From Octopus sinensis (taxonomy: Eukaryota): a DNA stretch of 64,000 nt. Made by a program: the position numbers and the translations under genes. Location: positions 10,230,001 to 10,294,000 of the forward strand of contig NC_043025.1 in assembly GCF_006345805.1 (NCBI RefSeq), written 5' to 3'. The notes beneath the pieces were generated by a model. That model saw only the letters and a list, made by a program, of their open reading frames with translations, was not told the origin of the DNA and ran no database searches. Below, one piece after another: positions 1,971 through 33,100 of this stretch. Each line of letters starts with the position of its first letter. Position 1 is the first letter of the stretch.

Positions 1971-4900
1971 GTGAGTTGCTGTATAAAATGTATAGCTTTG
2001 TTTATTGTCACATATTTTCTGTATTTTACAACTTCAGTTACCTTCATATGCAATCTAGAATAAATTTAGGATATTGCTGATATACACAGCAAGGAACAAC
2101 AGACAAATAATTGAGTTTAATTTCTCTTCTTTCTGTAATTAGGGTGTGTTAAGGTAAATTACAGTTCAGGCTTTATTGTCACATCTTTCTGCATTTTTTT
2201 TACCTTCAAATAGCTTGAGTTACGATCTAGAATGGGTTGGGGATTCTGTTGGTAGTAGGGCAACATATATTTTCAAAATAGGGGGGGGGGCTGCCATCTA
2301 GTTAATTAACTTTAATTACGCTTCTTTCTATAATTAGGGTGGATTCTGTGTGGCGAGTTCATTAGCGAGGACTTCGTTTATTGTCACATAGTTCTGTATT
2401 CCACGCCTTCATTTAGTATAGAGTCTAGGGTGGGTTTCGGATACTGTAGGTACAAAAAATCTAAGTTTAATTATACTATTTTCTTTAATTAGAGTGTGAT
2501 ATGGTAAATGTGTATAGAGAATGCATCAGCAAAGTGGTCGATAAATATCTAGAATGATTTTAAGTATGATTCGGCATTCTTAGGGTGCTGAATCTGGAAG
2601 AGTGGGGGTACTTTAGGGCTCAACAATTTCCAGCCAAATATCGATACAATAACTAGTATTCACCAAATATATTTTACATTAAATATTCCGACTGTACTAA
2701 TTAATGTAATATGGTAGAATCGTTAGCACACCGGTCGAGATGCTTAGCGGCATTTCGTCCGTGTTTACGTTCTGAGTTCAAATTGTGGCGAGGCTGACTT
2801 TGCCTTTCATCCTTTCCAGGTCGATAAAATAACTACCAGTTGAGCAAGCACAGAGATCGATAAAATCGACTTGCTTCCTCCCCGAAATTATTGGTCTTAT
2901 GCCAAAATTTGAAACCAGTATGATAATCGGACTGGATTTTTGTTGGGTTTTCTTTTACCAATTTCTTAAAATATTTTCTTTGTAAAAAGCAGTAATGACA
3001 CAAAAAATGTAAATTATAAGTACCCTGACCCACTGGTATAAAGACTTCATTTATTATCACATATTTTAGCATTTCACCCGTTCAAGTAGCTGGGTACAAC
3101 AGTCCAGAGGGATGTACTGGCATAGCATATATAGTAGAACAAGTTTTATTATAAAAATACTAATAAACAGAACCACTAGAAGTATATTTGCTTCTCTTTC
3201 TATAATTATTGTGGGTTAGAGAGAATTCGTTTAGTTATCACATAGATCTCTATTTCACATCTTCCCGTAACTGGAAACACATAGTCTAGAACAGAAGACT
3301 ACTGGTATATAACAAGGAAAGATTTATTATTTTTAAAAAAGTGAGGAAGAAACACATAATTGAATTTAATTGCACCCTTTTCTGTAATTAGGGTGAGTTA
3401 TGTAAGGTGGATGTAAATGCACGGCCTAGTATTTAGGGCAGTGGTTTTCAACCAGGGTTCCGCCAGTACAGTGCAGGGGTTCCGCAAGAAGTTACAAAAC
3501 TGCTAAAATCGGCAGTAATTTTTACTTCTCCTGTGCAGATATGTGTGCATAAGACTATTAAATTATTGCACAGGAGTTCCTCGAGCCAGTGGAATGTTTC
3601 CTTGGGGTTCCGCTCCAGCAAAAAGTTTGAAAAGCACTGATTTAGGGTGTTGCATTTTCGTGATCGGATGATCGTGGCTTCGATCCTCGGAGCGGGCAGT
3701 GCGTTGTGTTCTTGAGCAAAACACTCTATTTCACCTGGTTCCAATCTACTCAGCTATAAATGAATCCCGTTCTGAGGGAGTTTTGTAACTCAGTCACTTA
3801 ACACGCCATGGAAACCGAATTAAGCTTCGGCTTTATGAGTTTTAGAGCTCATGGCAGATTTAATCCACGTTGAATTTCTGCATAATCTTCGTTTATTGTC
3901 ACATTTTCGGCTAGCTTGATATAATTATACCATTTTCTGTAATTAGGGTGTGTTATTGTGAACCCCTAGTGAGAATGCATCAGCAAAGTGGTCGATAAAT
4001 AGGTAGAATGGTTTTGAGTATTAAGGGTGCTGAATCTGGAATACTGTAGGTAATTTAGGGCTCAGTAATCCTCAGCCACATATCGATGCAAAAACTAGTA
4101 TTAGGGCTGCAGGTGTAGAGTGCTGTTGGTATATTGCTGGAAAATATTTATTATTAAAAAAAATAAAACAAACAAGAAAAAAAGAAACTGAGAATCTTTT
4201 CGGTTTGAACAGCAGTTTTTTCTAGCGGTGTCATATGAAATTGTCACCCATAATTATGACCCTAGTATTGATCTATTGCATTTCAATCTGTTTTAGGATT
4301 AGGGTTCTTCAAGGCAGTGCCCCAGCATGGCCCTAGTCTAATTACTAAAAGATGTGTGTGTGTGTGTTAGAATTCCGCTGAGGTCAACTTTGCCTTTCAT
4401 CCTTTTACAGTCGATGAAATAAGTACCTATTTCTTTACTACCCACCAGGGGCTAAACACAGAGAGGACAAACAAGGACAGACAGACGGATTAAGTCGATT
4501 ATATCGACCCCAGTGTGTAACTGGTGCTTATTTAATCGACCCCGAAAGGATGAAAGGCAAAGTCGACCTCGGCGGAATTTGAACTCAGAACGTAGTGGCA
4601 GACGAAATACCTATTTCTTTACTACCCACAAGGGGCTAAACACAGAGAGGACAAACAAGGACAGACAGACGGATTAAGTCGATTATATCGACCCCAGTGT
4701 GTAACTGGTGCTTATTTAATCGACCCCGAAAGGATGAAAGGCAAAGTCGACCTTGGCAGAATTTGAACTCAGAACATAACAGCAGACAAAATACCACCTA
4801 GCATTTCACCCGGTATGCTAACGTTTCTGTCAGCTCGCCGCCTTAATTCTACCAAATTCTATCACGGTCAACTTTACTTTTGTCTTTTTGGAGTCGATGA

Positions 4901-7900
4901 AATAAGTACCTGTTATGCACTAAGGGCAATGCAGTCAACTTATCCCCTCCCCCAAAATTTCAGGCCTTGTACCTATAACAAAAAAGGGTTATTTTGAGGT
5001 GGTAGTGAGGACATGCTATGTGGCTGTTCTGTAGTGTAGCAGCGGTGGTGGTGGTAGTGGTGGTGGTGGTGGTGACAGTGTTGCTTGATAGCGACAATGT
5101 GTGGTTGAGATGTAGTGTGACAATAGTCAAGCCATCATATGGTGATGTAGTGTGACAGTTGAGACATGTTGTGTGTGGGTGTACAGTGAGCTGGTCAGGA
5201 CATCATATAACTTGTTAACAGAAATGTTTTCCTTTCCCAGCATGGTCGTGTGAAGGTAAGAACAACAGCTGAACAGGCTGAAGTGAAAAGGAAGGAGAGA
5301 GAGAAGAAGCTACAGTTATACAGTGCTGCATTGGAGAAGATATTTGATAAGGTATGTAGATTATGAGCCAAGTTGGGGGCTGGTGTCTTTCAAATTGCCT
5401 GGAATTGTTCGGAAAGAGGTAGACCCAGGAAAACCTGGGACGAGGTGGTGAAGAACGACCTTCGTACTTTAGGTCTCACCAAGGAAATGACCAGAGACCG
5501 AGACCTTTGGAAGTATGCTGTGCGTGGGAAGACCCAGCAGGACAAGTGAGACCATAACCCGTGGCCTCTACCTGGGACGTAGCCAGCCCACTTATGCATA
5601 CTTTTCCTTCTTGTGACAGAAACCCTACTTGTGAAGACCTGTTGAGGCAAGTGAAAATCGAAATCGATCAACATCAATGGAAATTGTAGCTGAGATACCA
5701 GTGCTGGTGGCACATAAGAGAATCATCCGAAAGTGGCCATTGCCAGCGCCGCCCCGACTGGCCTCTGTGCTGGTGGCACGTAGAAATCAACCATCTGATC
5801 ATGGCCGTTTGCCAGCCTCATCTGGCACATAAAAAGCACCCACTACACTCTCAGAGTGGTTGGCGTTAGGAAGGGCATCCAGCTGTAGAAACACTGCCAG
5901 ATCAGACTGGGCCTGGTGCAGCCTTCTGGCTTCCCAGACCCCAGTTGAACCGTCCAACCCATGCTAGCATGGAAAACGGACGTTAAACGATGATGATGTT
6001 CCTAATTGAAGTAGTCCTTGTACCTAGTCGGTCCTGTAAATTTCAGGTTCTGACTATCTATAGTTCTGATTGTATGAGCATTTACAGTAGGGGCTGAGCT
6101 AAATTTTAGGATTTTGTTAAATTTCAAAGCTATGTGATAATACGTGGTTAACCTTTAGCACTCTGCATTTCCTCTAGATTTGTTTCCCCTACCACTGTCC
6201 TGTTACAACAGGGGATAAAACTTATACAGTGACCTGATGCTCCCACCGTGTGCTAAAGGTTAATTTAAAACAATATGCCAGCGCCACCTAGACTGGCCTC
6301 TGTGCCGGTGGCACATAAAGAGCACCATCCGAATGTGGCTGATGCCAGTGCCGCCTTGACTGGCTTCCGTGCCGGTGGCATGTAAAAAGCACCAATCTGA
6401 TCGTGGCTGGTTGCCAGCCTCGCCTGGCACATAAAAAACAACCACTACACTCACGGAGTGGTTGGCGTTAGGAAGGGCATCCAGCTGTAGAAACACTGCC
6501 AGATCAGACTGGAGCCTGGTGCAGCCTTCTGGCTTCCCAGACCCCAGTTGAACCGTCCAACCCATGCTAGCATGGAAAACGGACGTTAAACGACGATGAT
6601 GAGGATAATAATAATAATAATAATAATAATTGTGTACAGTGCTCAGGTGCACTACAACTCATCTAAAGTGTATATATAATCAGGTGTAGTTTCGACGGAT
6701 TTCGGGAAGCATGAGGGCCTTAAAGGATGCAGTGTCATGGCAGTCAACAACTGATGCAGGCAGTTTATTCCACGCTTCAGCAACCCTGAGCGTGAAAAAA
6801 TGTTTCCGAAAGTCATGGGAGCTGTGCTGTTTTCTGACTTTGTAGGCATGTCCACGTGTGTTAGACACATGGAGATCAAAAAGGTGTTCAGTGTTGTTGT
6901 TGGTGAGGTGGTTGATAACCTTGTGGGTGTTTACCAAGTCCGTCGCTAGACGCCGGAGCTTCAGTGAATCCATGCCCAGGGAAACAAGGCGCTCAGAATA
7001 TGGTAGGTGTCTGATGGAGGGTATGCGTTTGGTTGCACGTCTCTGGACAGATTCCAGGAGGTCAATGTTCTGAGCAAGATAGGGATTCCAAACTGATGAT
7101 GCGAATTCCAAGTGTGGTCGTACCATAGCTGTATACAGTTTTAAATAGATGGCTGGAGAGCGGCTAACAAAAGTCTTGCTGAGTGATGCCAAGACACCCT
7201 CGGCCTTCTTGACAATTTTAGAGATATGCTTTGTCCAACGCAAATCACTGCTGACAGTGATGCCTAGGTCATGCTCGCAAGAGGATTTCTTGATATCAGT
7301 GTTGTGGAGGGAGTATGTGGACGCAGGGTTTTTTCTCCCAAAATGCATGGTGGTACACTTGTCCACAGCCAGTTTCAGTTGCCAGTCTGTGATCCATTGC
7401 TGCATTGCGTCTAGGTCTGATTGCAGGAAAGAGTTGTAGACATCTGGATCAGTCCTCTTGATTTCAAGGTACAGCTTGATGTCGTCTGCATATTTCAATA
7501 CTGTGGCATTCTTTAAATTGGCATCTATGTCATTAATGTATGCCACAAACAGGAGGGGCCCAAGGACAGATCCCTGTGGTACACCCGATGGTGTAGAGTG
7601 CTGTCCTAGAACTGTGACTACCTCCTTTCGGCTGAGGATGAAGGATTTTAACCAGTTAAAAAGGTCATCCCCCACACCCATTGCAGAGAGTTTCACCATA
7701 AGCCTTTTGTGTGGCACAGAGTTGAAAGCCTTAGCAAAGTCAAGGTAGACAACATCCACCCATGAGCCACTGTCAGTGATCTGAGTAATGTCCTCAAGGA
7801 ACTCGACAAGCTGGTCACTGCAGCTGGAGTTAGGGACAAATCCATATTGTGAGGGTCGGATGAGACTGTGAGAGCTCCAGAAGTTCCAGAGTGTTTCTCT

Positions 7901-15481: not shown

Positions 15482-18400
15482 TCAGGAAGAGAGAGTCTTA
15501 TCACATCTATCTCTATATGTATGTCTGTCAGTCAGTTTTTCAGTCTAATCCATCTATCACTATTAATTTATCTCTCTACTTGTAGGAAGGGTTGAACCTG
15601 ACTTCCTCCAGGTCATTGCCTCCCGAGCCACGAAGACCCTCACCATCAGTGTCACCAAACCAATCCATCCCGTAAGTTCTTTCGTCACACACATATAGAA
15701 ACCGAGCCAGATCAGACTGGAACCTGATGCTACTCTGCAGCTTGCCAGCTTTCATCAAACCGTCCGACTCATGCCAGCATGGACAACAGGCATTAAATAA
15801 GGATGATGATGATATATCGTCATCATCATTAAATTCTCTTGTTCCTGGCATGGTTTGAGACAGTTTAACATAATCCAAAGACATATGTGGAGGCACATGG
15901 CCTATTGGTTAGAGCAGCGGACTCGCGGTCGAGGGAATCGCGGGTTCGAATTTTTATATCATGATTATTTATTTTTAGCGCCGCCCCAACTGGCTTCCGT
16001 ACCAGTGGCACGTAAAAAGCACCAACCGATCGTGGCCATTGCCAGCCTCGCCTGGCACCTGTGCTGGTGGCACATAAAAAGCACCAACCGATCGTGGCCA
16101 TTGCCAGCCTCACCTGGCCCCCGTGCCGGTGGCACGTAAAAAGCACCATCTGATTGTGGCCGTTGCCAGCCTCGCCTGGCACCTGTGCGGGTGGCACGTA
16201 AAAATCACCCACTACACTCACGGAGTGGTTGGCATTTAGGAAGGGCATCCAGCTGTAGAAACCCTGCCAGATTTGACTGGGCCTGGTGCATCCTCCTGGC
16301 TTCTCAGACCCCAGTTGAACCGTCCAACCCATGCTAGCATGGAAAGCGGACGCTAAACGATGATGATGATGAATGACATTGTAGAGTAGATATGAGGGGC
16401 CAGATTTGGCTGGTCTGAACATGAAACGGGTTGAATATTTGGGCCAGATATGACCAGTTTAAATGCTAAATGGTTAAAACAAGGGCTGGTTCACATGACA
16501 TTTGGGCATGTCTACACCCACTAGTTGGCCTACGTGATACATATCTAAGGACCAGCTCTCATCCAAGTCCTGTATGCCTTAATAACAGAACCCTTTTTTT
16601 GCTGTCTAATCTATAACTGGAACTCTTGAAATGTACTTTGGGCCACAGCAAAACCAAGAAGTAGCTATGATTCATGGGTCACTGCATGTTCCTTAAACTC
16701 CTGAACCTGCATGAGATGCAGTTTGGTGTCTTACTCATGACCATTCACACACACATACACACACACTCACTCACTCACTCACTCACTCACTCACTCACTC
16801 ACTCACTCACATACACACACACACATACACACTCACTCACATATACACACACTCACTCACTCACATACACACACGCACTCACTCACTCACTCACATACAC
16901 ACACACACACTCACATACACACACTCACTCACACACACACTCTCACTCACTCACATACACTCACTCACTCACATACACTCACACACACACACACACACAT
17001 GCATTCATAAACCTTTCAACTATTTGTGTTCTTGTTTTGTTTTGTTTCATTATTTTCACTATTTTCACTTTCACTTTCGTTTTCTCTCTGTTCCAGCTGG
17101 AAAGTTGTGAGAAGGTGGAAGTGTCCATCAATGACACCCCTGTTACTGCTTCCTCTTCAAAGTGGCACAACCCATTCCACAACGACTACTATTCCCCAGT
17201 ATGGATATCCTTTTGCTGAACTTCTACTATTAATTATACTAATAATAATAATTGTTGCAAATTTTAGCACAAGGCCAGCAATTTTGTAAGAGGGTTAGTC
17301 GATTATATCAACCCCAGTACTTAACTGGTGTTTATTTTATCAATCTCGAAAAGCTGAAAGGCAGTCATCCTCAGCAGAGTCAGAAGAAATGCTACTAAGC
17401 ATTTTGTCTGATACTAATGATTCTGTCAGCTCACCACAATGATGATGATCCTTGGCCACGATTATAATTTCACTTAGCTTGACGAGTCTTCTCAAGAGCA
17501 GCGTATCACCAAAGATCTCGGTGACTTGTCATCACCTCCATAAGGCCCAACATGCTTCACCACCTGTCACAGGTGTGAGGGGCTAAGTCTGGCCAGTTTG
17601 AACGTAAGACAGTGTGCCATTTGTTCTTATAAAATTGCTTATAAAATTTGCTTTCATCTACTGGTTCCATTCAGGTGTCATGGACTTCAAATACATCGGC
17701 GATGCTTCGGTATATGTACACATGTGACTTTGTTTACATTTCTGAAGATAACAGAAACCCTTTTCTCCTAACCCTAACTCTAACACAAACCCTAACCCCC
17801 CATATATAAAAAAACCCACTTTTTTGAAATGTATCTGGTACTTCCACCAGTACATATACCGAAGGTTCGCCAATACATCTAACATTCTTTCCTTGACTCT
17901 CAGTAAATTCTTCCTCTACCTAAAGAGTTCTTGTCGGAAACTTCCCTGGACATCACGGTTAAACTTTACGCTGAATCGACGACCCTAGCAAGCTGTACCC
18001 TTTCGCTGAAAGAATCAACGGACCGTATCTGCTATCGTTCTAATAACCTGACACCAGACACAATTTTCAAGTTAGTTTTAGTTTTTATCCTTTACTTGTT
18101 TCATTTGTTCGACTGCTGCCATGCTGGAGCACTGACCTGGCCCCAGTACTTATTATTTTCAAGTTTACCACTTATTCTGTTAATCTTTTTTGCTGAACTG
18201 CCAAGTTACAGGTATATAGACAAAGCACCAGCAGTAGAGGGACACACACACATACACATTATTATATATATATATATATATATATAAAGTATGACACACT
18301 GATACATAAAATTTGTTTTGCCATTTATTATATATATCTGTCTGCCTATCTATCTATCTATCTATCTGTCTGCCTATCTATCTTTCTATCCGACTGTTTG

Positions 18401-21400
18401 TTTACCTATCTGTTTATTTATCTATTTCATTATCTATCTATCTCTCCATCTGTCTCTGTGTACCTTGCTGTATTTTTCAGCTCAGAACTTAGTGCTGCCA
18501 AGACTGCCATTTTAGCAAAAGAGTTGGAAGCCATTCAGGAACTTCTGCAACTGGAGACTGAGAACAAATGTTAGTGGTGTTACTCACATGTTGTTGTTAG
18601 TGTTGTTGTTCATGTTATTGTTACTGCTAACTTAGGGCTAAGCAACAATTACAAGAGCGGATATGTTAAATAATGTAGTCCTAGATACATAGCATCTGAA
18701 TAAAATGTAGGGTGGTCATCACTGGAACATCTATGATCATAGGTCTGCTAGATTAGGAACAATCTGGGGTTAAACAACAAGAAAAGAGATGTTAAATAAT
18801 GTAGTCCTAGATACATAGCATCTGAATAAAATGTAGGGTGGTCATCACTGGAACATCTATGATCATAGGTCTGCTAGATTAGGAACAATCTGGGGTTAAA
18901 CAACAAGAAAAGAGATGTTAAATAATGTAGTCCTAGATACATAGCATCTGAATAAAATGTAGGGTGGTCATCACTGGAACATCTATGATCATAGGTCTGC
19001 TAGATTAGGAACAATCTGGGGTTAAACAACAAGAAAAGAGATGTTAAATAATGTAGTCCTAGATACATAGCATCTGAATAAAATGTAGGGTGGTCATCAC
19101 TGGAACATCTATGATCATAGGTCTGCTAGATTAGGAACAATCTGGGGTTAAACAACAAGAAAAGAGATGTTAAATAATGTAGTCCTAGATACATAGCATC
19201 TGAATAAAATGTAGGGTGGTCATCACTGGAACATCTATGATCATAGGTCTGCTAGATTAGGAACAATCTGGGGTTAAACAACAAGAAAAGAGATGTTAAA
19301 TAATGTAGTCCTAGATACATAGCATCTGAATAAAATGTAGGGTGGTCATCACTGGAACATCTATGATCATAGGTCTGCTAGATTAGGAACAATCTGGGGT
19401 TAAACAACAAGAAAAGAGATGTTAAATAATGTAGTCCTAGATACATAGCATCTGAATAAAATGTAGGGTGGTCATCACTGGAACATCTATGATCATAGGT
19501 CTGCTAGATTAGGAACAATCTGGGGTTAAACAACAAGAAAAGAGATGTTAAATAATGTAGTCCTCATGCCTGAATGACATGATGGTCACAGCTGGAACAC
19601 CTTTGACCATATTCTGTTAGATCAGAACTGACTTGGGGTTAAACAACAACAAAAAGGATGGACACATGAAACACTGTAGTCCTAGATATGTTATGACTGG
19701 ATAAAAGATAGGATGGTTATAGATATGTCATCATCATCGTTTAACGTCCGCTTTCCATGCTGGCATGGGTTGGACGGTTCGACCAGGGTCTGGGAAGCCA
19801 GAAGGCTCCACCAGACTCCAGTCTTATCTGGCAGTGTTTCTACAGCTGGATGCCCTTCCTAACGCCAACCACTCCGTGAGTGTAGTGGATGCTTTTTACG
19901 TACCACCGGTACAGGTGCCAGGGGGGGCTGGCAAACGGCCACGATCGGTTGGTGCTTTTTATGTGCCACCAGCACAGAAGCTAGTCAATATCATCATCAT
20001 CATCGTTTAACGTCCGCTTTCCATGCTGGCATGGGTTGGACGGTTCGACCAGGGTCTGGGAAGCCAGAAGGCTGCACCAGACTCCAGTCTGATCTGTCAG
20101 TGTTTCTACAGCTGGATGCCCTTCCTAACGCCAACCACTCCGTGAGTGTAGTGGGTGCTTTTTACGTACCACCGGTACAGGTGCCAGGGGAGGCTGGCAG
20201 CTGCCACGATCGGTTGGTGCTTTTTATGTGCCACCAGCACAGAAGCTAGTCAATATCATCATCATCATCGTTTAACGTCCACTTTCCATGCTGGCATGGG
20301 TTGGACAGTTCAACTGGGGTCTGGGAAGCCAGAAGGCTGCACCAGACTCCAGTCTGATCTGTCAGTGTTTCTACAGCTGGATGCCCTTCCTAACGCCAAC
20401 CACTCCGTGAGTGTAGTGGGTGCTTTTTACGTACCACCGGTACAGGTGCCAGGGGAGGCTGGCAGCTGCCACGATCGGTTGGTGCTTTTTATGTGCCACC
20501 AGCACAGAAGCTAGTCAATATCATCATCATCATCGTTTAACGTCCGCTTTCCATGCTGGCATGGGTTGGACAGTTCAACTGGGGTCTGGGAAGCCAGAAG
20601 GCTGCACCAGACTCCAGTCTGATCTGTCAGTGTTTCTACAGCTGGATGCCCTTCCTAACGCCAACCACTCCGTGAGTGTAGTGGGTGCTTTTTACGTACC
20701 ACCGGTACAGGTGCCAGGGGAGGCTGGCAGCTGCCACGATCGGTTGGTGCTTTTTATGTGCCACCAGCACAGAAGCTAGTCAATATCATCATCATCATCG
20801 TTTAACGTCCGCTTTCCATGCTGGCATGGGTTGGACAGTTCAACTGGGGTCTGGGAAGCCAGAAGGCTGCACCAGACTCCAGTCTGATCTGTCAGTGTTT
20901 CTACAGCTGGATGCCCTTCCTAACGCCAACCACTCCGTGAGTGTAGTGGGTGCTTTTTACGTACCACCGGTACAGGTGCCAGGGGAGGCTGGCTGGCAGC
21001 GGCCACGATCGGTTGGTGCTTTTTACGTGCCACCGACACAGAAGCCAGTCAATGTATGAAATAAAAATTTTAAAAATTGAAAAGAAAAACTTTCTAAACC
21101 TGTTCTCTTTATTTACCTTCCAGGGGCCATGTTGACTGTTGTGCAGTTGATGCAAGCATTGAATTCACAGCGCTATAGTGCAGACATAAATAACTATCTA
21201 AACACACTGAGCCAGATTGACCCCAAACGAGACAATTACTACAAGGACTACAGTAAGTTTATCCCAATCTTAGTAAATTGAGGGTCACACCTGTGGGGTA
21301 GGAGTGTGGCCCATCCCTCCTTCAATTTCTTTTAATTTTGTCTTTCAATTTTTGTTGTTTTTTTCTTTGTGTTGTTCAGTTTTTTGTTTTTGTTTTTTTA

Positions 21401-24400
21401 GGCAAGCTGGCATTGGTATAGCTGTGGGTTTAAGAAATACATACATACATATATATATATATATATGTGTGTGGAGGCGCAATGGCCCAGTGGTTAGGGC
21501 AGCGGACTCGTGGTCGTAGGATCGCGGTTTCGATTCCCAGACCGGGCGTTGTGAGTGTTTATTGAGCGAAAACACCTAAAAGCTCCACGAGGCTCCAGCA
21601 GGGGGTGGTGATCCCTGCTGTACTCTTTCACCACTCTTTCTTAAGAAATACATACATACATATATATATATATATGTGTGTGGAGGCGCAATGGCCCAGT
21701 GGTTAGGGCAGCGGACTCGTGGTCGTAGGATCGCGGTTTCGATTCCCAGACCGGGCGTTGTGAGTGTTTATTGAGCGAAAACACCTAAAAGCTCCACGAG
21801 GCTCCAGCAGGGGGTGGTGATCCCTGCTGTACTCTTTCACCACTCTTTCTTAAGAAATACATACATACATATATATATATATATATGTGTGTGTGGAGGC
21901 GCAATGGCCCAGTGGTTAGGGCAGCGGACTCGTGGTCGTAGGATCGCGGTTTCGATTCCCAGACCGGGCGTTGTGAGTGTTTATTGAGCGAAAACACCTA
22001 AAAGCTCCACGAGGCTCCAGCAGGGGGTGGTGATCCCTGCTGTACTCTTTCACCACTCTTTCTTAAGAAATACATACATACATATATATATATATATGTG
22101 TGTGGAGGCGCAATGGCCCAGTGGTTAGGGCAGCGGACTCGTGGTCGTAGGATCGCGGTTTCGATTCCCAGACCGGGCGTTGTGAGTGTTTATTGAGCGA
22201 AAACACCTAAAGCTCCACGAGGCTCCAGCAGGGGGTGGTGATCCCTGCTGTACTCTTTCACCACTCTTTCTTAAGAAATACATACATACATATATATATA
22301 TATATGTGTGTGGAGGCGCAATGGCCCAGTGGTTAGGGCAGCGGACTCGTGGTCGTAGGATCGCGGTTTCGATTCCCAGACCGGGCGTTGTGAGTGTTTA
22401 TTGAGCGAAAACACCTAAAAGCTCCACGAGGCTCCAGCAGGGGGTGGTGATCCCTGCTGTACTCTTTCACCACTCTTTCTTAAGAAATACATACATACAT
22501 ATATATATATATATGTGTGTGGAGGCGCAATGGCCCAGTGGTTAGGGCAGCGGACTCGTGGTCGTAGGATCGCGGTTTCGATTCCCAGACCGGGCGTTGT
22601 GAGTGTTTATTGAGCGAAAACACCTAAAAGCTCCACGAGGCTCCAGCAGGGGGTGGTGATCCCTGCTGTACTCTTTCACCACTCTTTCTTCTGTTGGCCT
22701 GCTCGCTTAGCCAGCGGGATGGCGTCATTCGAAGGCTAAAACAATGCGAATGCATTGTGACCAGCGATATGTAACAACATCTGATGGTCTGGTCGGTCAC
22801 GTGATATATCTATATAATCAGCAGCAGCAGATTTTGATGATGTCCATCATCATCATTTAGCATCTACTTTCCATGCTGGCATGGGTTAGATGGTTTGACT
22901 GGAACTGCTAGGCTGGAGAGCTGCACCAAGTTCCAGTCTGATTTAACATGGTTTCTACAGCCAGATGCCCTTCCTGACACCAACCACTCCAAATGTGTAA
23001 TGGCTGCTTTTTCTGTGCGACCAGCATAAGTACCAGTTACGTGACACTGGCATCAGTCTTCTCAAGCACACCATTTTGCCAAAGGTTTATCACTTGTCAT
23101 CACCTCTTTGAGGCCCATCTTTGAAAGAACTTTTCTTCATCCATTTCCTTCCAGTCATTCAAAATGTGACCACGTGTGTACCGTTGGCGATTTTTTATTC
23201 CTCTGTCTTCCCTTCTCTCAATCTTTCCGTCTCCTATGTTTCCGACGAAGAGCTCCGCTCGAAACCTTAAACCCACCTTCTTCCCTTCCTTCCTGAGCAT
23301 CCAATAATACTATATTTGTTCCACGTCCTCACATTGTTGTGTTTTCATGTTTGGATTAACTTTATATTTATATATATATATATCACATTACATGACTGAC
23401 CAGGCTATCAGATGTTGCTACACATCGCTGGTCACAATGCGCTTTAAATTATTTTTTTAGCCTTCAAATGACGCCACCCCGCTGGCTAAGCGAGCAGACC
23501 AACAGAAGAAAGAGTGAGAGAAAGTTGTGGCGAAAGAGTACAGCAGGGATCACCACCATCCCCTGCCGGAGCCTCATGGAGCTTTAGGTGTTTTTGCTCA
23601 ATAAACACTCACAACACCCGGTCTGGGAATCGAAACCACGATCCTATGGTCGCGAGTCCGCTACCCTAACCACTGGGCCATTGCGCCTCCACTTCTGAGT
23701 ACAGCAGGGATCGCCACCACCCCCTGCTGGAGCCACGTGGGGCTTTAGGTGTTTTCGGTCAATAAACACTCACAACGCCCGGTCTGGGAATCGAAACCGC
23801 AATCCTACGACCGCGAGTGCACTACCCTAACCACTGGGCCATTGTGCCTCCACATATATATATGGATGTGTGTGTGTTTGTGTATGTTTCCCCCGCACCC
23901 CCTCATTTTAATATATGTTCACTGGTTGTAAATAATGACCTTCTGAGCAAACACTCTTGCTTGCTTGCAATCTGCAGCAAAAACATGTCCAGGCTTGTCA
24001 ACATGTTGCATGATCTTTGTAAACAAAAGCCTCATTTGTCCAGTGATGTTTGTTCCCAGTTCTTTGCATGTACATTACGTTCTGAGTTTAAATGCCACTG
24101 AGATCAACTTTGCCTCTTCGTCCTTTTGAGGTAAAATAAGTACCAGCTGAACGCTGGGGGGTCAATGCAATCGACTTACCTCCTTGCCTGAACTTTCTGG
24201 TTTTGTATCAAAATTTGAAATTATTACGTTTATATATTTGTTGTGCAAGATTTTTTATGTGAAGTCGTGTGTTGAAACAGATATTGTTATATTTCGGAAT
24301 GGTCATTTTGCCAGTTTAGCCAATAAATTATTATTATTATTATTCAATAGTCCTATTTTTATCATATGCTTTCACTGCACTACACAGTTCTGTGTACTAT

Positions 24401-26670
24401 GGTTTGTTGTGATGCTCTTATTTTTACTGTATTGAAAGTGTTTTACATAGGATGTCTGCGGTACCTAGTAGTGCTATTTTCTGTATGTTTTATATACTTG
24501 TTAGTCTTGGTGTTTTGTTTTGTATTTGTCTGAATGTTTTTGGTTTTTTTTTATCATAATAATGCACCTCTTATGATAGTTGTTTCTGCTTTTAGACTCC
24601 ACATTCGAGTTACCTCTATTTCCCGGTCTTTGTATTTTGAAAGATTCTCCATTTCTTTTAGAGTAACTTTATTATTATCTTTTGTATTTCAGAAAGTAAA
24701 GTGACGATAGAAAATCAGATCAAATCCATGGATGGTAGTCAAGCCAAACTTGTACTCAAGGGTCTTGACCTTTCTACAGTGTACCATCTGGAGCATCTGG
24801 TATCAGTGCAAGTGTTGGACCTGTCTTCTAACAATATTTCACGTCTGCACACATTTGCCTATCTGCAGAGTGTGGAATCTCTAGATCTGGACCACAACAA
24901 GATCAACAGCATTGAGGGCCTTGGACTTCTCCCTAATCTCACGCACCTCTCGTTACGCCATAACTGTATCCTTGACTTATGTATCTGCATATTTTTGTTT
25001 TCATTCTCTCCTTTCATCTTCATCATCATCATCATTCTGATGTCCACTTTTCCACACTTGCATAAGTCAGACGGAATTCATAAAGGTGGATCTTCTATGG
25101 TCAGATGCCTTTCCTGTTACAAACCTTCACCTGTTTCCATCATCATCATCGTTTAACGTCCGTTTTCTGTGCTAGCATGGGTTGGACGGTTCGACCGGGG
25201 TCTGGGAAGCCAGGAAGCTGCACCAGACTCCAATCTGATCTGGTAGTGTTTCTACAGCTGGAATTCCTTCCTATCGCCAACCACTCTGTGAGTGTAGTGG
25301 GTGCATTTTACGTGCCACTAGCACAGGTGCCAGACGAGGCTGGCAAAGGCCACGATCGGATGCTGCTTTAGGCCAGTTGGGGCGGTGCTGGCAACGGCCA
25401 CGTTCGGATGGTTCTCTTACATGCCACCGGCACTGGTATCACAACTACAATTTCCATTGATTTTGCATATAAGATAATATTTCCCCATGACCAGACATGA
25501 CTTCACAGAAGATAGGAAAACAAACAACATTGCTTGCACTACAATGCCACCTGTTTACAACTATCACACTAAGTCAGGTCAAAGAGATAACACACATAAG
25601 CTTCTTTCAGTTTCCATTTACCAAATCCACTTACAAGGCGTTAATCAATCCAGTGCTATAATCGAAGCTACTTGCCCAAAGCGCAGTAGAGCAGCAGGCC
25701 TCCTACCACACAGCCATGCCTGCACCTGTGTGTTTGCCTCCTTGTCATCACATTGCATGATCATACACAAAGCCTTATTCGTTTCCAATAATCTGTGAAA
25801 CCAGTTTGCTTGGAAACAGGTAAGTCCTGATGGCAGGAAGGGCATATCATCATTTAACGTCCACCTTTCCTGCTGGCATGGGTTGGGCAATTTGAAAGGA
25901 ACCTGCACCATACTTCTGTGTCTGTTTTGGTATGGTTTTTATGGCTGGATGCCCTTCCCAACACCAGCCACTCTGCAGAGTGGACTGAATGCTTTTTACA
26001 TGGCACCAGCACAGGTGAGGTTAATTTTGGCATGGTTTTTACAGCTGGATGCACTTTCAAATGCCAACCACTTTACAGTGTGGACTGGATGCTTTTTAAG
26101 TAACCAGAGAAAATCTGCCTCAAATTAATTCCATCAGTCTCATGGAGAAATGGTCTTTAAAATAATGATAGTGATGAGGGCATGTGTGTGTGTGTGCATG
26201 CCTAGGTGAGTAGTTTCATTCTGTAGGCTCTGACAAATTGCTGAGCAACAGATAGTGACCTTTGTTGATATTTTCCATTTAATAAATTGTTTAGTAGCTC
26301 TGTGCTTCCAAAGATAAATGTTACAAAAACTCTTTTACTTGAAAAAACAGACAAGGGTTTGTAAAAGGAAAAGCATTTGGCCACACAACACCTCAATATG
26401 ATGTATTCCTCTGACCCATGCTAGCATGGAAAATCGGATATAAAATGAATGAATGAATTTACAATTTGATCACAGGTTGTTTTTCTTTAACCCATTTAAA
26501 CCACAGGCCTGTTGAAAGTTGATGATCTTCGACCACTCCAGTCCTGTGCGGCTCTGAAAGAACTCAATCTGGAAGGGAACGCTCTCACAGAAGATGACAC
26601 AGACTACCGGAATTCTGTACAACAGCTTCTGCCACAGCTGACACACGTTGACAGCAACCCAATAAACTAA
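1968..26670 (+). CDS. RABGGTA: Rab geranylgeranyltransferase (GGTase-II) alpha subunit, spliced gene, 13 coding exons, 574 aa
   Basis: Exons 1968-1970, 5241-5351, 9231-9355, 10223-10410, 11162-11362, 14234-14317, 15586-15671, 17097-17204, 17907-18070, 18481-18569, 21124-21252, 24693-24965 and 26507-26670 sum to 1725 nt and splice in frame with consistent phases. The translation shows the family architecture: [11 protein letters not shown]-terminus, PPTA repeats ([56 protein letters not shown]), an Ig-like insert and C-terminal LRRs. Confidence 0.96.
5241..5351 (+). CDS. RABGGTA: RABGGTA exon 2 ([37 protein letters not shown])
   Basis: cctttcccag acceptor, gtatgt donor, conserved N-terminus. 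Confidence 0.95.
5395..5540 (+). mobile_element. RTE LINE extreme 3' fragment fused to a SINE
   Basis: Translates as [36 protein letters not shown]. Confidence 0.75.
6606..8495 (-). mobile_element. 5'-truncated CR1/L2-group non-LTR retrotransposon with an intact RT ORF (6680-8446, 588 aa)
   Basis: RT motifs [27 protein letters not shown] and [10 protein letters not shown]1-type C-terminus ([18 protein letters not shown]), (ATT)n 3' tail at 6606-6630, no endonuclease domain. It lies in RABGGTA intron 2. Confidence 0.93.
9231..9355 (+). CDS. RABGGTA: RABGGTA exon 3 ([41 protein letters not shown])
   Basis: ttttccag acceptor, gtatgt donor, NPDFxTLWNxR motif. Confidence 0.95.
9437..9806 (+). 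mobile_element. tRNA-derived SINE family S1 (full copy). Other copies at 23385-23840 (-), 37190-37680 (-, variant), 40540-40925 (-) and 49380-49765 (-).
   Basis: tRNA-like head with A/B boxes, dispersed near-identical copies. Confidence 0.88.
10223..10410 (+). CDS. RABGGTA: RABGGTA exon 4 ([33 protein letters not shown]...DERN)
   Basis: ttttcag acceptor, gtaagt donor, PPTA repeat. Confidence 0.97.
11162..11362 (+). CDS. RABGGTA: RABGGTA exon 5 ([10 protein letters not shown]...[16 protein letters not shown]...)
   Basis: actttcag acceptor, gtaata donor, PPTA repeat. Confidence 0.97.
11390..11850 (+). mobile_element. SINE family S4 with an internally reiterated body. Other copies at 2715-2850, 4370-4990, 10615-10860, 52380-52540 (-) and 53990-54120 (-).
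   Basis: GTTCTGAGTTCAAATTCCGCCGAGGTCGACTTTGCCTTTCATCCTTTCGGGGTCGAT motif. Confidence 0.85.
13072..13487 (-). mobile_element. MITE family M1 copy
   Basis: TIRs and internal homology. Confidence 0.85.
13607..13826. mobile_element. piggyBac-type MITE
   Basis: TTAA|CCCTTTTGTTAC ... GTAACGAAAGGG|TTAA. A second copy lies at 26967-27186 in the opposite orientation. Confidence 0.8.
14234..14317 (+). CDS. RABGGTA: RABGGTA exon 6 ([27 protein letters not shown])
   Basis: gttccag acceptor, gtaaga donor, conserved motif. Confidence 0.97.
14866..15192. repeat. About 325-bp AT-rich near-perfect palindrome (foldback element)
   Basis: Arms of about 155 bp mirror each other around gtataattatac at about 15027. 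Confidence 0.88.
15298..15326 (+). ncRNA. Degenerate Penelope-type minimal hammerhead motif
   Basis: CTGTTGA-A-GAGC-GTAG-GCTT-GAAATGTAA. Confidence 0.4.
15586..15671 (+). CDS. RABGGTA: RABGGTA exon 7 ([28 protein letters not shown])
   Basis: tctacttgtag acceptor, gtaagt donor. It supplies the required phase 1 to phase 0 change and matches the start of the Ig-like insert. Confidence 0.85.
15980..16372 (+). mobile_element. SINE family S3 with a (GAT)n tail. Other copies at 5700-5998, 6271-6600, 8770-9110, 13920-14165 (-), 25140-25440 (-), 61925-62175 (-) and 63145-63355.
   Basis: Conserved GAGTGGTTGGCGTTAGGAAGGGCATCCAGCTGTAGAAAC...CGGACGTTAAACGATGATG. Confidence 0.88.
16745..17000. repeat. 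(CA)n/(CACT)n microsatellite
   Basis: Direct reading. Confidence 0.92.
17097..17204 (+). CDS. RABGGTA: RABGGTA exon 8 ([36 protein letters not shown])
   Basis: Long polypyrimidine tract plus cag, followed by the U12-type donor ATATCCTTTT. Confidence 0.88.
17205..17906 (+). other. U12-type minor intron with AT-AA termini (RABGGTA intron 8)
   Basis: 5' ATATCCTTTT, branch site TTTCCTTGAC at 17888-17897. The only stop-free in-frame acceptor is ...CAGTAA|ATT. Confidence 0.78.
17907..18070 (+). CDS. RABGGTA: RABGGTA exon 9 ([21 protein letters not shown]...PDTIF)
   Basis: Follows the U12 branch site TTTCCTTGAC and ends at a gttagt donor. The in-frame start requires an AA acceptor. Confidence 0.8.
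18481..18569 (+). CDS. RABGGTA: RABGGTA exon 10 ([29 protein letters not shown])
   Basis: tttttcag acceptor, gttagt donor, ELxxLExENKW motif. Confidence 0.95.
18663..19715. repeat. 126-bp tandem repeat (7 identical copies plus degenerate units) in RABGGTA intron 10
   Basis: atgttaaataatgtagtcctag recurs at 18663, 18789, 18915, 19041, 19167, 19293, 19419 and 19545. Confidence 0.95.
19730..21055 (-). repeat. Five tandem 265-bp copies of a (GAT)n-tailed SINE 3' part
   Basis: Identical pseudo-ORFs start at 20155, 20420, 20685 and 20950. Confidence 0.93.
21124..21252 (+). CDS. RABGGTA: RABGGTA exon 11 ([12 protein letters not shown]...[12 protein letters not shown])
   Basis: ccttccag acceptor, gtaagt donor, DPxRxxY motif. 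Confidence 0.95.
21433..22810 (+). repeat. Six tandem copies (about 210 bp) of a tRNA-derived SINE head plus microsatellite
   Basis: GGAGGCGCAATGGCCCAGTGGTTAGGGCAGCGGACTCG (A-box) ... TTCGATTCC (B-box) repeated six times. Confidence 0.93.
23242..23269 (+). ncRNA. Degenerate Penelope-type minimal hammerhead ribozyme motif
   Basis: CCGACGA-A-GAGC-TCC-GCTC-GAAAC-CTT, compared with consensus CTGATGA..stem II..GAAAC. Confidence 0.5.
24693..24965 (+). CDS. RABGGTA: RABGGTA exon 12, leucine-rich repeats ([25 protein letters not shown])
   Basis: tatttcag acceptor, LRR consensus, followed by the U12 donor GTATCCTTG. Confidence 0.95.
24966..26506 (+). other. U12-type GT-AG minor intron (RABGGTA intron 12)
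   Basis: 5' GTATCCTTGA, branch site TTTTCTTTAAC at 26481-26491, CAG at 26504-26506. Confidence 0.88.
26507..26670 (+). CDS. RABGGTA: RABGGTA exon 13, last coding exon ([26 protein letters not shown]...SNPIN*)
   Basis: U12-like branch site TTTTCTTTAAC about 16 nt before cacag, LNLxGN LRR cap, TAA stop. Confidence 0.93.
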
Positions 26671-28199: not shown

Positions 28200-29490
28200 C
28201 GAGGGGCGTTCAATAAGTAATGCCTCTGACCTACTTGCAGTTGTTTGATCTAGCTGAAATTTTGCATGTGCAATTATTTATATCTCTATAAATTAAGTGG
28301 CAAATTACAGCTCTGAAATAATTGTGGTTTCTGATTTACAGGTGTTTGAACTGAGTCAAGTGTGAAATGGAGCCTGTTGAGTGGCGAGCAGTGATCCGGT
28401 TTTTGTAGTTGAAAGGACGCACACCACGGGAGACTTTTGATGAAATAAAAGTAACTTATGGTGATGATGCCCCATCATATAACCTTGTAAAACCCTGACA
28501 TAGTGAATTCAAACATGGTCGGAACTCTGTGGAAACAGCTCCCAGATCTGGTCACCCCCTTCTGCCATTGATGAGGCATCTGTCCGTCAAGTTGAGGCTG
28601 CCATTTTGGAAGATCGACGCATAACTATTCACCAAATAGCCCATGAGGTCAAGATTAATACCGGGTCTGTGGAAACTATCATTCATGACCATCTGCACAT
28701 GCAAAAGGTGTCTGCCAAATGGATTCCCAGGTTGCTCACACCTTTCCAGAAGCAAAAACGCGTCGAGCGCTCGAAGATGAATTTGGAGATGTGCCAAGAA
28801 GATGAATCAAAATTTTTCAAAAGTCTGATTACACATGATGAAACCTGGGTCCATCACTATGATCCAGAGACCAAAGCCCAGTCAATGCAGTGGAAGCACC
28901 GTGACTCACCTCCTCCAAAGAAGGCAAGGGTGCAGCCCTCTGCTGGTAAGGTCATGCTCACAGTCTTCTGGGACCAGGACGGAGTAGTGATGACAGATTT
29001 CCTGGCAAAGGGTACCACAATTACAGGAGCCTATTATGCTTCACTTTTGAGGAAATTAAGAGAAGCTATCAAAATCAAGACGCGGGGCAAGATCAGCAAA
29101 GAAATCCTCCTCCTGCAGGACAACGCTCCGGTCCACAACTCGCGTGTCACCAGATCAGAAGCACAGGCGTGCGGCTATGAACTCCTCCCCCATCCCCCTA
29201 CTCTCCTCCCCTTGCACCCTCTGATTTTCACCTCTTCCCAGCCATGAAGTTGTTTTTGAAAGGAAAGCGTTTCCCAAATGATGCAGCCTTGATTTCTGAA
29301 GTCACGTCGTGGTTGGAGGACCAAGCTGGGGTCTTCTACAAAAACGGTCTCCAGAGCTGCATTAAACAATGGGAGAAATGCATAACTCTGGGTGGTTTTT
29401 ATGTAGAAAAAGACTAATAACTGTGCCAAATTTCATTGCTCTACTGCTATGGGAAGTGGGTCAGGAGCATTACTTATTGAACGCCCCTCG
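28200..29490 (+). mobile_element. Full-length (1291 bp) mariner (DD34D-type) DNA transposon with a decayed transposase
   Basis: TIRs CGAGGGGCGTTCAATAAGTAATGC at both ends, TA target-site duplications at 28198-28199 and 29491-29492. Confidence 0.95.
28367..29417 (+). pseudogene. Mariner transposase pseudogene
   Basis: MEPVEWRAVIRFL* start, KWIPRLL linker, THDETWVHHYDPETK, QDNAPVH and YVEKD* end, with in-frame stops and frameshifts. Confidence 0.92.
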
Positions 29491-30184: not shown

Positions 30185-33100
30185 CTGAAAGGAGAAGAAA
30201 GACAGTTTTAGTTAAAATTATGGAAATACATGCATATGGCTTTCACAGAAGACATGGAACATTCTAGATTCATGTCAATGTCTGGTGTGGAGAGAAATTA
30301 AACAAGAAATAGCTTACAAACTACAGAATTTTCTCAAGAACACCAAGAGAAAAAGATGCTTTATGTGACACATTCTACCAGTATACGAAAGACATGGAAC
30401 ATTCCAGATTCATGTCAATGTCTGGTGTGGAGAGAAATTACACAAGAAATAGCTTACAAACTACAGAATTTTCTCAAGAACACCAACAGAAAAAGATGCT
30501 TTATGTGACACATTCTACCAGTATACGAAAGACATGGAACATTCCAGATTCATGTCAATGTCTGGTGTGGAGAGAAATTAAACAAGAAATAGCTTACAAA
30601 CTACAGAATTTTCTCAAGAACACCAAGAGAAAAAGATGCTTTATGTGACACATTCTACCAGTATACGAAAGACATGAAACATTCTAGATTCATGTCAATG
30701 TCTGGTGTGGAGAGAAATTAAACAAGAAATAGCTTACAAACTACAGAATTTTCTCAAGAACACCAAGAGAAAAAGATGCTTTATGTGACACATTCTACCA
30801 GTATACGAAAGACATGAAACATTCTAGATTCATGTCAATGTCTGGTGTGGAGAGAAATTAAACAAGAAATAGCTTACAAACTACAGAATTTTCTCAAGAA
30901 CACCAAGAGAAAAAGATGCTTTATGTGACACATTCTACCAGTATACGAAAGACATGAAACATTCTAGATTCATGTCAATGTCTGGTGTGGAGAGAAATTA
31001 AACAAGAAATAGCTTACAAACTACAGAATTTTCTCAAGGACACCAAGAGAAAAAGATGTTTTATGTGACACATTCTACCAGTATACGAAAGACATGGAAC
31101 ATTCTAGATTCATGTCAATGTCTGGTGTGGAGAGAAATTAAACAAGAAATAGCTTACAAACTACAGAATTTTCTCAAGAACACCAAGAGAAAAAGATGCT
31201 TTATGTGACACATTCTACCAGTATACGAAAGACATGAAACATTCTAGATTCATGTCAATGTCTGGTGTGGAGAGAAATTAAACAAGAAATAGCTTACAAA
31301 CTACAGAATTTTCTCAAGAACACCAAGAGAAAAAGATGCTTTATGTGACACATTCTACCAGTATACGAAAGACATGAAACATTCTAGATTCATGTCAATG
31401 TCTGGTGTGGAGAGAAATTAAACAAGAAATAGCTTACAAACTACAGAATTTTCTCAAGAACACCAAGAGAAAAAGATGCTTTATGTGACACATTCTACCA
31501 GTATACGAAAGACATGGAACATTCTAGATTCATGTCAATGTCTGGTGTGGAGAGAAATTAAACAAGAAATAGCTTACAAACTACAGAATTTTCTCAAGAA
31601 CACCAAGAGAAAAAGATGCTTTATGTGACACATTCTACCAGTATACGAAAGACATGGAACATTCTAGATTCATGTCAATGTCTGGTGTGGAGAGAAATTA
31701 AACAAGAAATAGCTTACAAACTACAGAATTTTCTCAAGAACACCAAGAGAAAAAGATGCTTTATGTGACACATTCTACCAGTATACGAAAGACATGGAAC
31801 ATTCTAGATTCATGTCAATGTCTGGTGTGGAGAGAAATTAAACAAGAAATAGCTTACAAACTACAGAATTTTCTCAAGAACACCAAGAGAAAAAGATGCT
31901 TTATGTGACACATTCTACCAGTATACGAAACACATGAAACATTCTAGATTCATGTCAATGTCTGGTGTGGAGAGAAATTAAACAAGAAATAGCTTACAAA
32001 CTACAGAATTTTCTCAAGAACACCAAGAGAAAAAGATGCTTTATGTGACACATTCTACCAGTATACGAAAGACATGAAACATTCTAGATTCATGTCAATG
32101 TCTGGTGTGGAGAGAAATTAAACAAGAAATAGCTTACAAACTACAGAATTTTCTCAAGAACACCAAGAGAAAAAGATGTTTTATGTGACACATTCTACCA
32201 GTATACGAAAGACATGGAACATTCTAGATTCATGTCAATGTCTGGTGTGGAGAGAAATTAAACAAGAAATAGCTTACAAACTACAGAATTTTCTCAAGAA
32301 CACCAAGAGAAAAAGATGCTTTATGTGACACATTCTACCAGTATACGAAAGACATGGAACATTCTAGATTCATGTCAATGTCTGGTGTGGAGAGAAATTA
32401 AACAAGAAATAGCTTACAAACTACAGAATTTTCTCAAGAACACCAAGAGAAAAAGATGCTTTATGTGACACATTCTACCAGTATACGAAAGACATGGAAC
32501 ATTCCAGATTCATGTCAATGTCTGGTGTGGAGAGAAATTAAACAAGAAATAGCTTACAAACTACAGAATTTTCTCAAGAACACCAAGAGAAAAAGATGCT
32601 TTATGTGACACATTCTACCAGTATACGAAAGACATGGAACATTCTAGATTCATGTCAATGTCTGGTGTGGAGAGAAATTAAACAAGAAATAGCTTACAAA
32701 CTACAGAATTTTCTCAAGAACACCAAGAGAAAAAGATGCTTTATGTGACACATTCTACCAGTATACGAAAGACATGAAACATTCTAGATTCATGTCAATG
32801 TCTGGTGTGGAGAGAAATTAAACAAGAAATAGCTTACAAACTACAGAATTTTCTCAAGAACACCAAGAGAAAAAGATGCTTTATGTGACACATTCTACCG
32901 GTATACGAAAGACATGGAACATTCCAGATTCATGTCAATGTCTGGTGTGGAGAGAAATTAAACAAGAAATAGCTTACAAACTACAGAATTTTCTCAAGAA
33001 CACCAAGAGAAAAAGATGCTTTATGTGACACATTCTACCAGTATACGAAAGACATGGAACATTCTAGATTCATGTCAATGTCTGGTGTGGAGAGAAATTA

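Follow-up and report, generated by a model that had tools for sequence, protein, structure and literature searches.

Intron 8 of the gene for the alpha subunit of Rab geranylgeranyltransferase (RABGGTA) is, in our view, most probably a natural U12-type (minor-spliceosome) intron, fixed in evolution and of the AT-AA subtype. The gene lies on the forward (+) strand of the 64,000-nucleotide (nt) stretch of Octopus sinensis DNA analysed here (contig NC_043025.1, positions 10,230,001–10,294,000), which we call the window and in whose coordinates the O. sinensis features are given; all of the RABGGTA features described below are on this strand. The intron spans 17205–17906 (702 nt), and its excision at the 17204/17907 junction, or at one of three equivalent shifts of +1 to +3, is the only way of joining exons 8 and 9 that gives the conserved protein found in RefSeq. 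We assign this interpretation, which is drawn from sequence comparison, a probability of about 0.9. The intron is genuine but ordinary: it belongs to a known kind of element and there is no sign of an unusual mechanism. An earlier note on this DNA, made from the sequence, had proposed a U12-type intron with AT-AA termini at this position, and the perfect donor, the branch-site box and the conserved orthologous introns described below bear this out.

Gene model and the exon 8–exon 9 junction

The RABGGTA coding region (1968–26670) was divided into 13 exons by following the stop-free segments of the + strand, with the stop codon at 26668–26670. The start codon (1968–1970) forms the final three nucleotides of exon 1, and intron 1 (1971–5240) begins immediately after the initiator codon (ATG/GTGAGT at 1968–1976). 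When intron 8 is removed with AT-AA termini the coding sequence is 1722 nt long, is open throughout and, with its initiator methionine, encodes 574 amino acids. This product is identical to RefSeq entry XP_029653078.1, the O. sinensis geranylgeranyl transferase type-2 subunit alpha (100% identity over 100% of the length), which confirms the expectation of the earlier note that the 17204/17907 junction yields the real protein. The exon numbers 8 and 9 used in that note are also right by the 13-exon model, and the positions that it gave for the SPVW end of exon 8, the donor, the branch A (about 17896) and the neighbouring CAG and AC all agree with our reading of the window.

Exon 8 (17097–17204) contributes 36 codons (LESCEK...YYSPVW) and ends in phase 0 after a conserved tryptophan, the last codons being TCC CCA GTA TGG. 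This tryptophan (W289 in the alignment) is invariant across the 13 aligned homologues. Exon 9 (17907–18070) encodes ILPLPKEFL...TPDTIF followed by the two bases AA, after which comes the donor AA/GTTAGT; the frame from 17907 is free of stops as far as this donor at 18070. The product matches the rat RabGGTase alpha subunit (PDB entry 1DCE, chain A) from end to end (E=1.5e-135), with the Octopus SPVW-ILPLPKEF region paired with SHVW-LCDLPAAS of the rat protein (SHVWLCDLPAAS), and the alignment of ILPLPKEF with mammalian LCDLPAAS in the earlier note is thereby reproduced. The same junction peptide is present in the O. bimaculoides RefSeq entry XP_052834101.1 (574 amino acids) and in an older partial record of 336 amino acids. 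The 17204/17907 junction is already part of the public RefSeq annotation. Protein-database queries with the 91-residue exon 8 plus exon 9 peptide and with a 201-residue fragment returned no match, even to the RefSeq protein with which they are 100% identical, which reflects a limit of the word index and not biology.

Splice signals of intron 8

The intron opens with the U12 5' splice site ATATCCTTT (17205–17213), a perfect U12 match that is present in a single copy in the window and is the same in O. vulgaris, O. bimaculoides and Sepia. The donor sequence ATATCCTTTT, which likewise starts at 17205 and occurs once in the window, fits the U12 consensus /[AG]TATCCTT. At the other end of the intron, the near-consensus U12 branch-site box TTTCCTTGAC (17888–17897) is the only TTCCTTRAC in the window, and its single A, at 17896, is the branch A. 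The box is followed by TC TCAG TAA / ATT CTT CCT CTA CCT across the boundary between intron 8 and exon 9. The terminal AA of the intron (17905–17906) is the same in the three Octopus assemblies, and AC stands at this register in Sepia and Haliotis. Intron 8 ends at 17906, 10 nt past the branch A at 17896, just as the earlier note had stated, and exon 9 begins 11 nt past it.

Taken singly, the donor and branch motifs occur at chance frequency: on both strands of the 64 kb, a single ATATCCTTT was observed where 1.04 would be expected, and a single TTCCTTRAC where 1.46 would be expected. Their placement, however, is far beyond chance, because both sole copies are on the coding strand, with the donor exactly at the end of exon 8 and the branch box 10 nt before the only frame-preserving junction, and because this arrangement is kept in orthologues. 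The pyrimidine fraction of the 22 nt lying 25 to 4 nt before exon 9, where a U12 intron is expected to lack a distinct polypyrimidine tract, is 0.73, compared with 0.64–0.86 for the other introns of the gene, but the branch box is itself pyrimidine-rich, which makes this measure non-discriminating. A scan of the window against Rfam gave no matches, and no small nuclear RNA genes were found nearby.

Several decoy sites lie close to the junction. The CAG at 17901–17903 is 7 nt past the branch A and is found in the three Octopus species and not in Sepia; translation from 17904 shows the next codon to be TAA (17904–17906), as had been claimed. The AC at 17918–17919 is 23 nt past the branch A and was correctly said to shift the frame to a TAG, which the frame from 17920 meets after 22 codons. 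Retention of the intron leads to a stop after four codons. The AG at 17926–17927 is in frame. We rejected it as the acceptor: it is 31 nt from the branch A, and its use would remove seven conserved codons (ILPLPKE) which show synonymous change only and which are present in the intronless gene of Argonauta.

U12 introns are defined by their donor and branch sequences rather than by their terminal dinucleotides, and U12 splicing works with non-canonical ends too. Established U12 biology would have U11 and U6atac pair with the donor of intron 8 and U12 with its branch box. The 3' cleavage site would then be set mainly by its short distance to the branch A rather than by which base comes last, a position that would be tolerant in A-type (AT-AN) introns. 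Because the site would be chosen by branch distance, the site at +10/+11 would be taken over the CAG at +7, which would be too near, and the AC at +23, which would be too far. These expectations are in keeping with published work, in which the distance from the U12 branch site to the 3' splice site is short, with an optimum of 11–13 nt (PMC3584512), AT-AA falls within the AT-AN class made up by the A-type minor introns (PMC3584512, PMC8280824), and AT-AA is the commonest non-canonical ending that minor introns have in animals and in plants (PMC10639083).

Conservation within Octopus

Orthologous RABGGTA loci were compared from the O. vulgaris (GCA_951406725.2) and O. bimaculoides (GCA_001194135.2) assemblies. 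In both, ATATCCTTTT stands immediately after the TGG codon, and the 3' end of the intron reads ...AACATTCTTTCCTTGACTCTCAGTAA/ATTCTTCC, as it does in O. sinensis (TTTCCTTGACTCTCAGTAA/ATTCTTCC). The final 29 nt of the intron (...TTTCCTTGACTCTCAGTAA/ATT) are identical in all three species. Upstream of this block the intron diverges by large indels, and its length is 702 nt in O. sinensis and 1425 and 1639 nt in the other two.

The flanking exons differ from those of O. sinensis mainly at synonymous positions. Across exons 8 and 9 there are 11 synonymous and three non-synonymous codon differences from O. bimaculoides, and seven synonymous and no non-synonymous differences from O. vulgaris. Two of the differences fall within ATT CTT CCT CTA CCT AAA GAG (ILPLPKE), both of them third-position and synonymous. 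This pattern indicates that exon 9 evolves under purifying selection in the frame that starts at 17907.

We also noted an insertion of about 180 nt inside intron 8 (17695–17874, + strand) which is specific to O. sinensis, O. vulgaris and O. bimaculoides both being without it. It has 25-nt terminal inverted repeats that are 88% complementary and carries AATACATC on either flank, and about 15 nt separate its end from the U12 branch box downstream. It looks like a miniature inverted-repeat transposable element with a target-site duplication.

The orthologous intron across animals

The comparison with cephalopod and other molluscan introns that the earlier note had called for was extended to other animals by mapping the protein of each species back onto its own locus to place the introns. 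Every version of the intron is in phase 0 and directly follows the invariant tryptophan, but its type varies. In the cuttlefish Acanthosepion (Sepia) pharaonis it is a U12 intron of the AT-AC subtype (TGG/ATATCCTTTT...TCCTTGACTCTCTTGAC/ATTATG) whose donor, branch box (TCCTTGAC) and 10-nt spacing match those of Octopus. A U12 AT-AC intron is also present in Haliotis (ATATCCTTCT...TACCTTAACTTTCACAC/). The U12-type introns of Lingula (GTATCCTTGT...TTCTTTGACATTTAG/, with TTCTTTGAC) and alligator (GTATCCAC, that is GTATCC..., followed by ...TTTCCTTGAC-N13-AG/) have GT-AG termini, and the introns of Mytilus (donor GTAATG), Liolophura (GTAAGT) and Xenopus (GTAACA) are of the U2 type.

The intron is absent from Argonauta hians, in which the contiguous sequence CCA GTG TGG ACA CTT GAC aligns codon for codon and with no indel to the Octopus TGG/ATT CTT CCT. 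The Argonauta gene has lost the intron precisely and is a natural record of the junction, much like a complementary DNA. For the orthologous junction there is direct evidence from RNA: a Logan RNA-seq contig of a related decapod, whose protein is 85% identical to that of Acanthosepion, reads CCT GTT TGG ATT ATG TTG, exactly as predicted.

The 3' end of the Octopus intron differs from that of Sepia at four of the last five bases (CAGTAA and TTGAC, respectively, in register), and therefore the change is more likely to be old drift at a tolerant position than one recent mutation. The intron is most probably the orthologue of an ancient minor intron that RABGGTA of bilaterians carries behind the conserved tryptophan, and its AA end derives from the AC of a classic AT-AC intron, a change in the Octopus lineage that left function intact.

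A further difference was observed in the Argonauta locus (L003, 11547–11840 and 4793–5131), in which the intron at about residue 209 has been lost too, leaving exons 5 and 6 contiguous, and in which the second U12-like intron of the gene, described below, is kept.

Alternative interpretations

We considered several other readings of the region. The first is that the AT-AA end together with its decoys, namely the CAG/TAA, the out-of-frame AC and an upstream U2-like GT at 17199, constitutes a selected switch coupled to nonsense-mediated decay that acts on RabGGTase alpha levels, a form of the rheostat on Rab prenylation suggested in the earlier note. Use of the decoys would yield premature stops, as does retention of the intron, and the three Octopus species do not differ in their CAG/TAA arrangement. 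U12 introns can be rate-limiting and are prone to error in the choice of their 3' splice site (PMC3584512), and competition between U2 and U12 splicing has been described in a human RABGGTA minigene (PMC10853781). The proposal is nevertheless pure conjecture from the presence of the decoy sites, and the conservation of the decoys is inseparable from that of the 29-nt block running from the branch to the 3' splice site. Furthermore, the CAG is missing in Sepia, the whole intron is dispensable in Argonauta, and decoys that give premature stops are common by chance near splice sites. We therefore regard a selected switch as improbable.

A more specific form of regulation can be imagined for the Octopus-specific TCTCAG-TAA/ end. 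The octopus belongs to a lineage famous for RNA editing. The end might act as a decision point that sets the share of productive RABGGTA messenger RNA (mRNA), either with the U12 site at +10 competing against the CAG at +7, which the major spliceosome could use together with the GT at 17199, or through editing of the terminal A to inosine by ADAR to give an AG-like end. What speaks for such a decision point is the presence of these sites and their conservation in three species, and we consider it very doubtful.

The third possibility is that the main mRNA takes another path that preserves the frame, either that of the GenBank model for O. vulgaris (P0002, 538 amino acids) or one through the in-frame AG at 17926–17927. 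The model route uses a donor GT at 17199, within the valine codon, then a 49-nt intronic pseudo-exon that holds the branch box, a donor GTAAAT at 17903 (CAG/TAA) and an acceptor deep in exon 9, and it keeps the frame with GT-AG introns alone. As the main isoform it was rejected: it drops the invariant tryptophan along with 51 conserved residues from the Ig-like insert, adds intronic residues that are present in no homologue, and in O. sinensis would need a pseudo-exon that is broken by the 180-nt insertion. The AG at 17926–17927 fares no better, given its distance from the branch A and the loss of ILPLPKE, a segment that is aligned in homologues. Gene predictors confined to canonical introns are known to mis-model U12 introns (PMC1635337), and we regard the 538-residue model as a product of such canonical-only modelling. 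Either of these paths as the source of the main mRNA thus seems to us a long shot.

Finally, the suggestion in the earlier note of a sequencing error or a one-base AC-to-AA variant, by which the AA would be an assembly fault or a private variant of an ordinary AT-AC intron, has a negligible chance of being correct: AT-AC is the canonical A-type ending and is that of the Sepia and Haliotis orthologues, but ...CTCAGTAA/ATT is identical in three independently sequenced species, the AA common to the three Octopus assemblies rules such an error or variant out, and the four differences from Sepia in the last five bases are not the work of a single-base slip.

The interpretation of intron 8 as a natural AT-AA intron of the U12 type has its own points against it, which we weigh together here. 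Use of the junction in Octopus rests on the RefSeq models, the conservation of the coding sequence, the decapod transcript and the intronless Argonauta gene, and the RefSeq models may derive partly from protein alignments. Removal of the intron by the U12 spliceosome itself is a prediction from its sequence. The 3' splice site follows the branch A by 10 nt, or by 11 nt if the first base of exon 9 is counted, which puts it at the low end of the published optimum, and the GenBank model for O. vulgaris takes a different path made up entirely of GT-AG introns. In addition, the register of the junction is formally ambiguous: because exon 9 begins with AT, four registers give an identical mRNA, namely 17205–17906 (AT-AA) and its shifts by +1 (TA-AA), +2 (AT-AT) and +3 (TC-TT). 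We treat this last point as a question of naming only, and the TA-AA, AT-AT and TC-TT registers were set aside in favour of AT-AA, the register to which both the consensus of U12 donors and the AT-AC orthologues point.

Comparison with known minor introns

In human RABGGTA, exons 9 and 10 are separated by a U12-type G/GT-AG intron that has served in minigene experiments (PMC10853781). From the exon count and from the GG at positions -2 and -1, which would belong to the tryptophan codon, we infer that this human intron 9 is the same intron as that of Octopus, located in the same gene and in phase 0 after VW. The alligator orthologue has a GTATCC... donor and the same TTTCCTTGAC branch box as Octopus. 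The human and alligator introns are of the GT-AG subtype, in contrast to the A-type Octopus intron with its non-canonical AA end. The closest resemblance in the details is to Sepia, where the donor ATATCCTTTT, the branch box TCCTTGAC and the 10-nt spacing are all as in Octopus. Both Sepia and Haliotis also share the exon junction TGG/AT(T/A) with Octopus, but their introns end in AC whereas that of Octopus ends in AA, and the Sepia intron is without the CAG decoy that Octopus has.

Parallels for the AT-AA ending itself come from other genes and lineages. In MSH3 the human intron is AT-AA and the mouse intron AT-AC, an example of AT-AC/AT-AA switching between orthologues, and in RASGRP4 the AT-AA ending is conserved between human and mouse (Sheth et al. 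2006, PMC1557818). The MSH3 and RASGRP4 introns are of the same subtype as that of Octopus and show the same switching of the 3'-terminal base between orthologues. An individual description of the Octopus RABGGTA AT-AA intron was not found in the literature.

Intron 8 leaves the current understanding of minor splicing and of Rab prenylation unchanged. It does offer a compact teaching example of minor-intron evolution, since a single position after an invariant tryptophan is occupied by a U12 GT-AG intron in Lingula, alligator and human, by AT-AC in cuttlefish and abalone, by AT-AA in Octopus and by a U2-type intron in mussel, chiton and frog, and has lost its intron in Argonauta. It also bears on annotation: the canonical-only model for O. 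vulgaris mangles the gene, whereas the RefSeq models for O. sinensis and O. bimaculoides are correct. The GenBank model in question (locus L001, OX597843.1, 13832–15424) mis-models the region even though the AT-AA intron of O. sinensis is present in the O. vulgaris genome as well.

Second U12-like intron and neighbouring features

The last intron of RABGGTA (24966–26506, + strand) is a second U12-like intron, in this case of the GT-AG subtype, with the donor GTATCCTTGAC, a branch-like box TTCTTTAAC at 26483–26491 and a CAG acceptor. Its donor motif GTATCCTT is found at the same phase-1 position in nine of the ten species of our per-intron table; besides O. sinensis these are O. vulgaris, O. 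bimaculoides, Argonauta, Sepia, Liolophura, Haliotis, Lingula and Xenopus, and the donor is U2-like in Mytilus. The alligator gene, which was examined separately, has GTATGTGCC at this position, with no match to the motif.

The surroundings of the gene were noted in several species. In Sepia, Liolophura, Haliotis and Lingula the immediate upstream neighbour of RABGGTA is a divergently oriented gene with an OTU domain (Peptidase_C65/OTU), an arrangement that suggests conserved micro-synteny. In O. vulgaris the MRPL52 gene is found downstream of RABGGTA.

The window also contains a number of repeats. Three tandem arrays lie within the span of the RABGGTA coding region: 7.2 copies of a 126-base-pair (bp) unit that are 100% identical (18663–19564), five copies of a 265-bp unit (19728–21053) and six copies of a 209-bp unit that has a transfer-RNA-like segment (21430–22690). 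Beyond the gene there is a 140-bp satellite of about 39 copies with 98% identity (30249–35759). Between the gene and this satellite, a stop-free segment of 246 amino acids (28507–29244, + strand) has motifs (...THDETWVHHYDPETK...) by which we take it to resemble a transposase of the mariner/Tc1 type.

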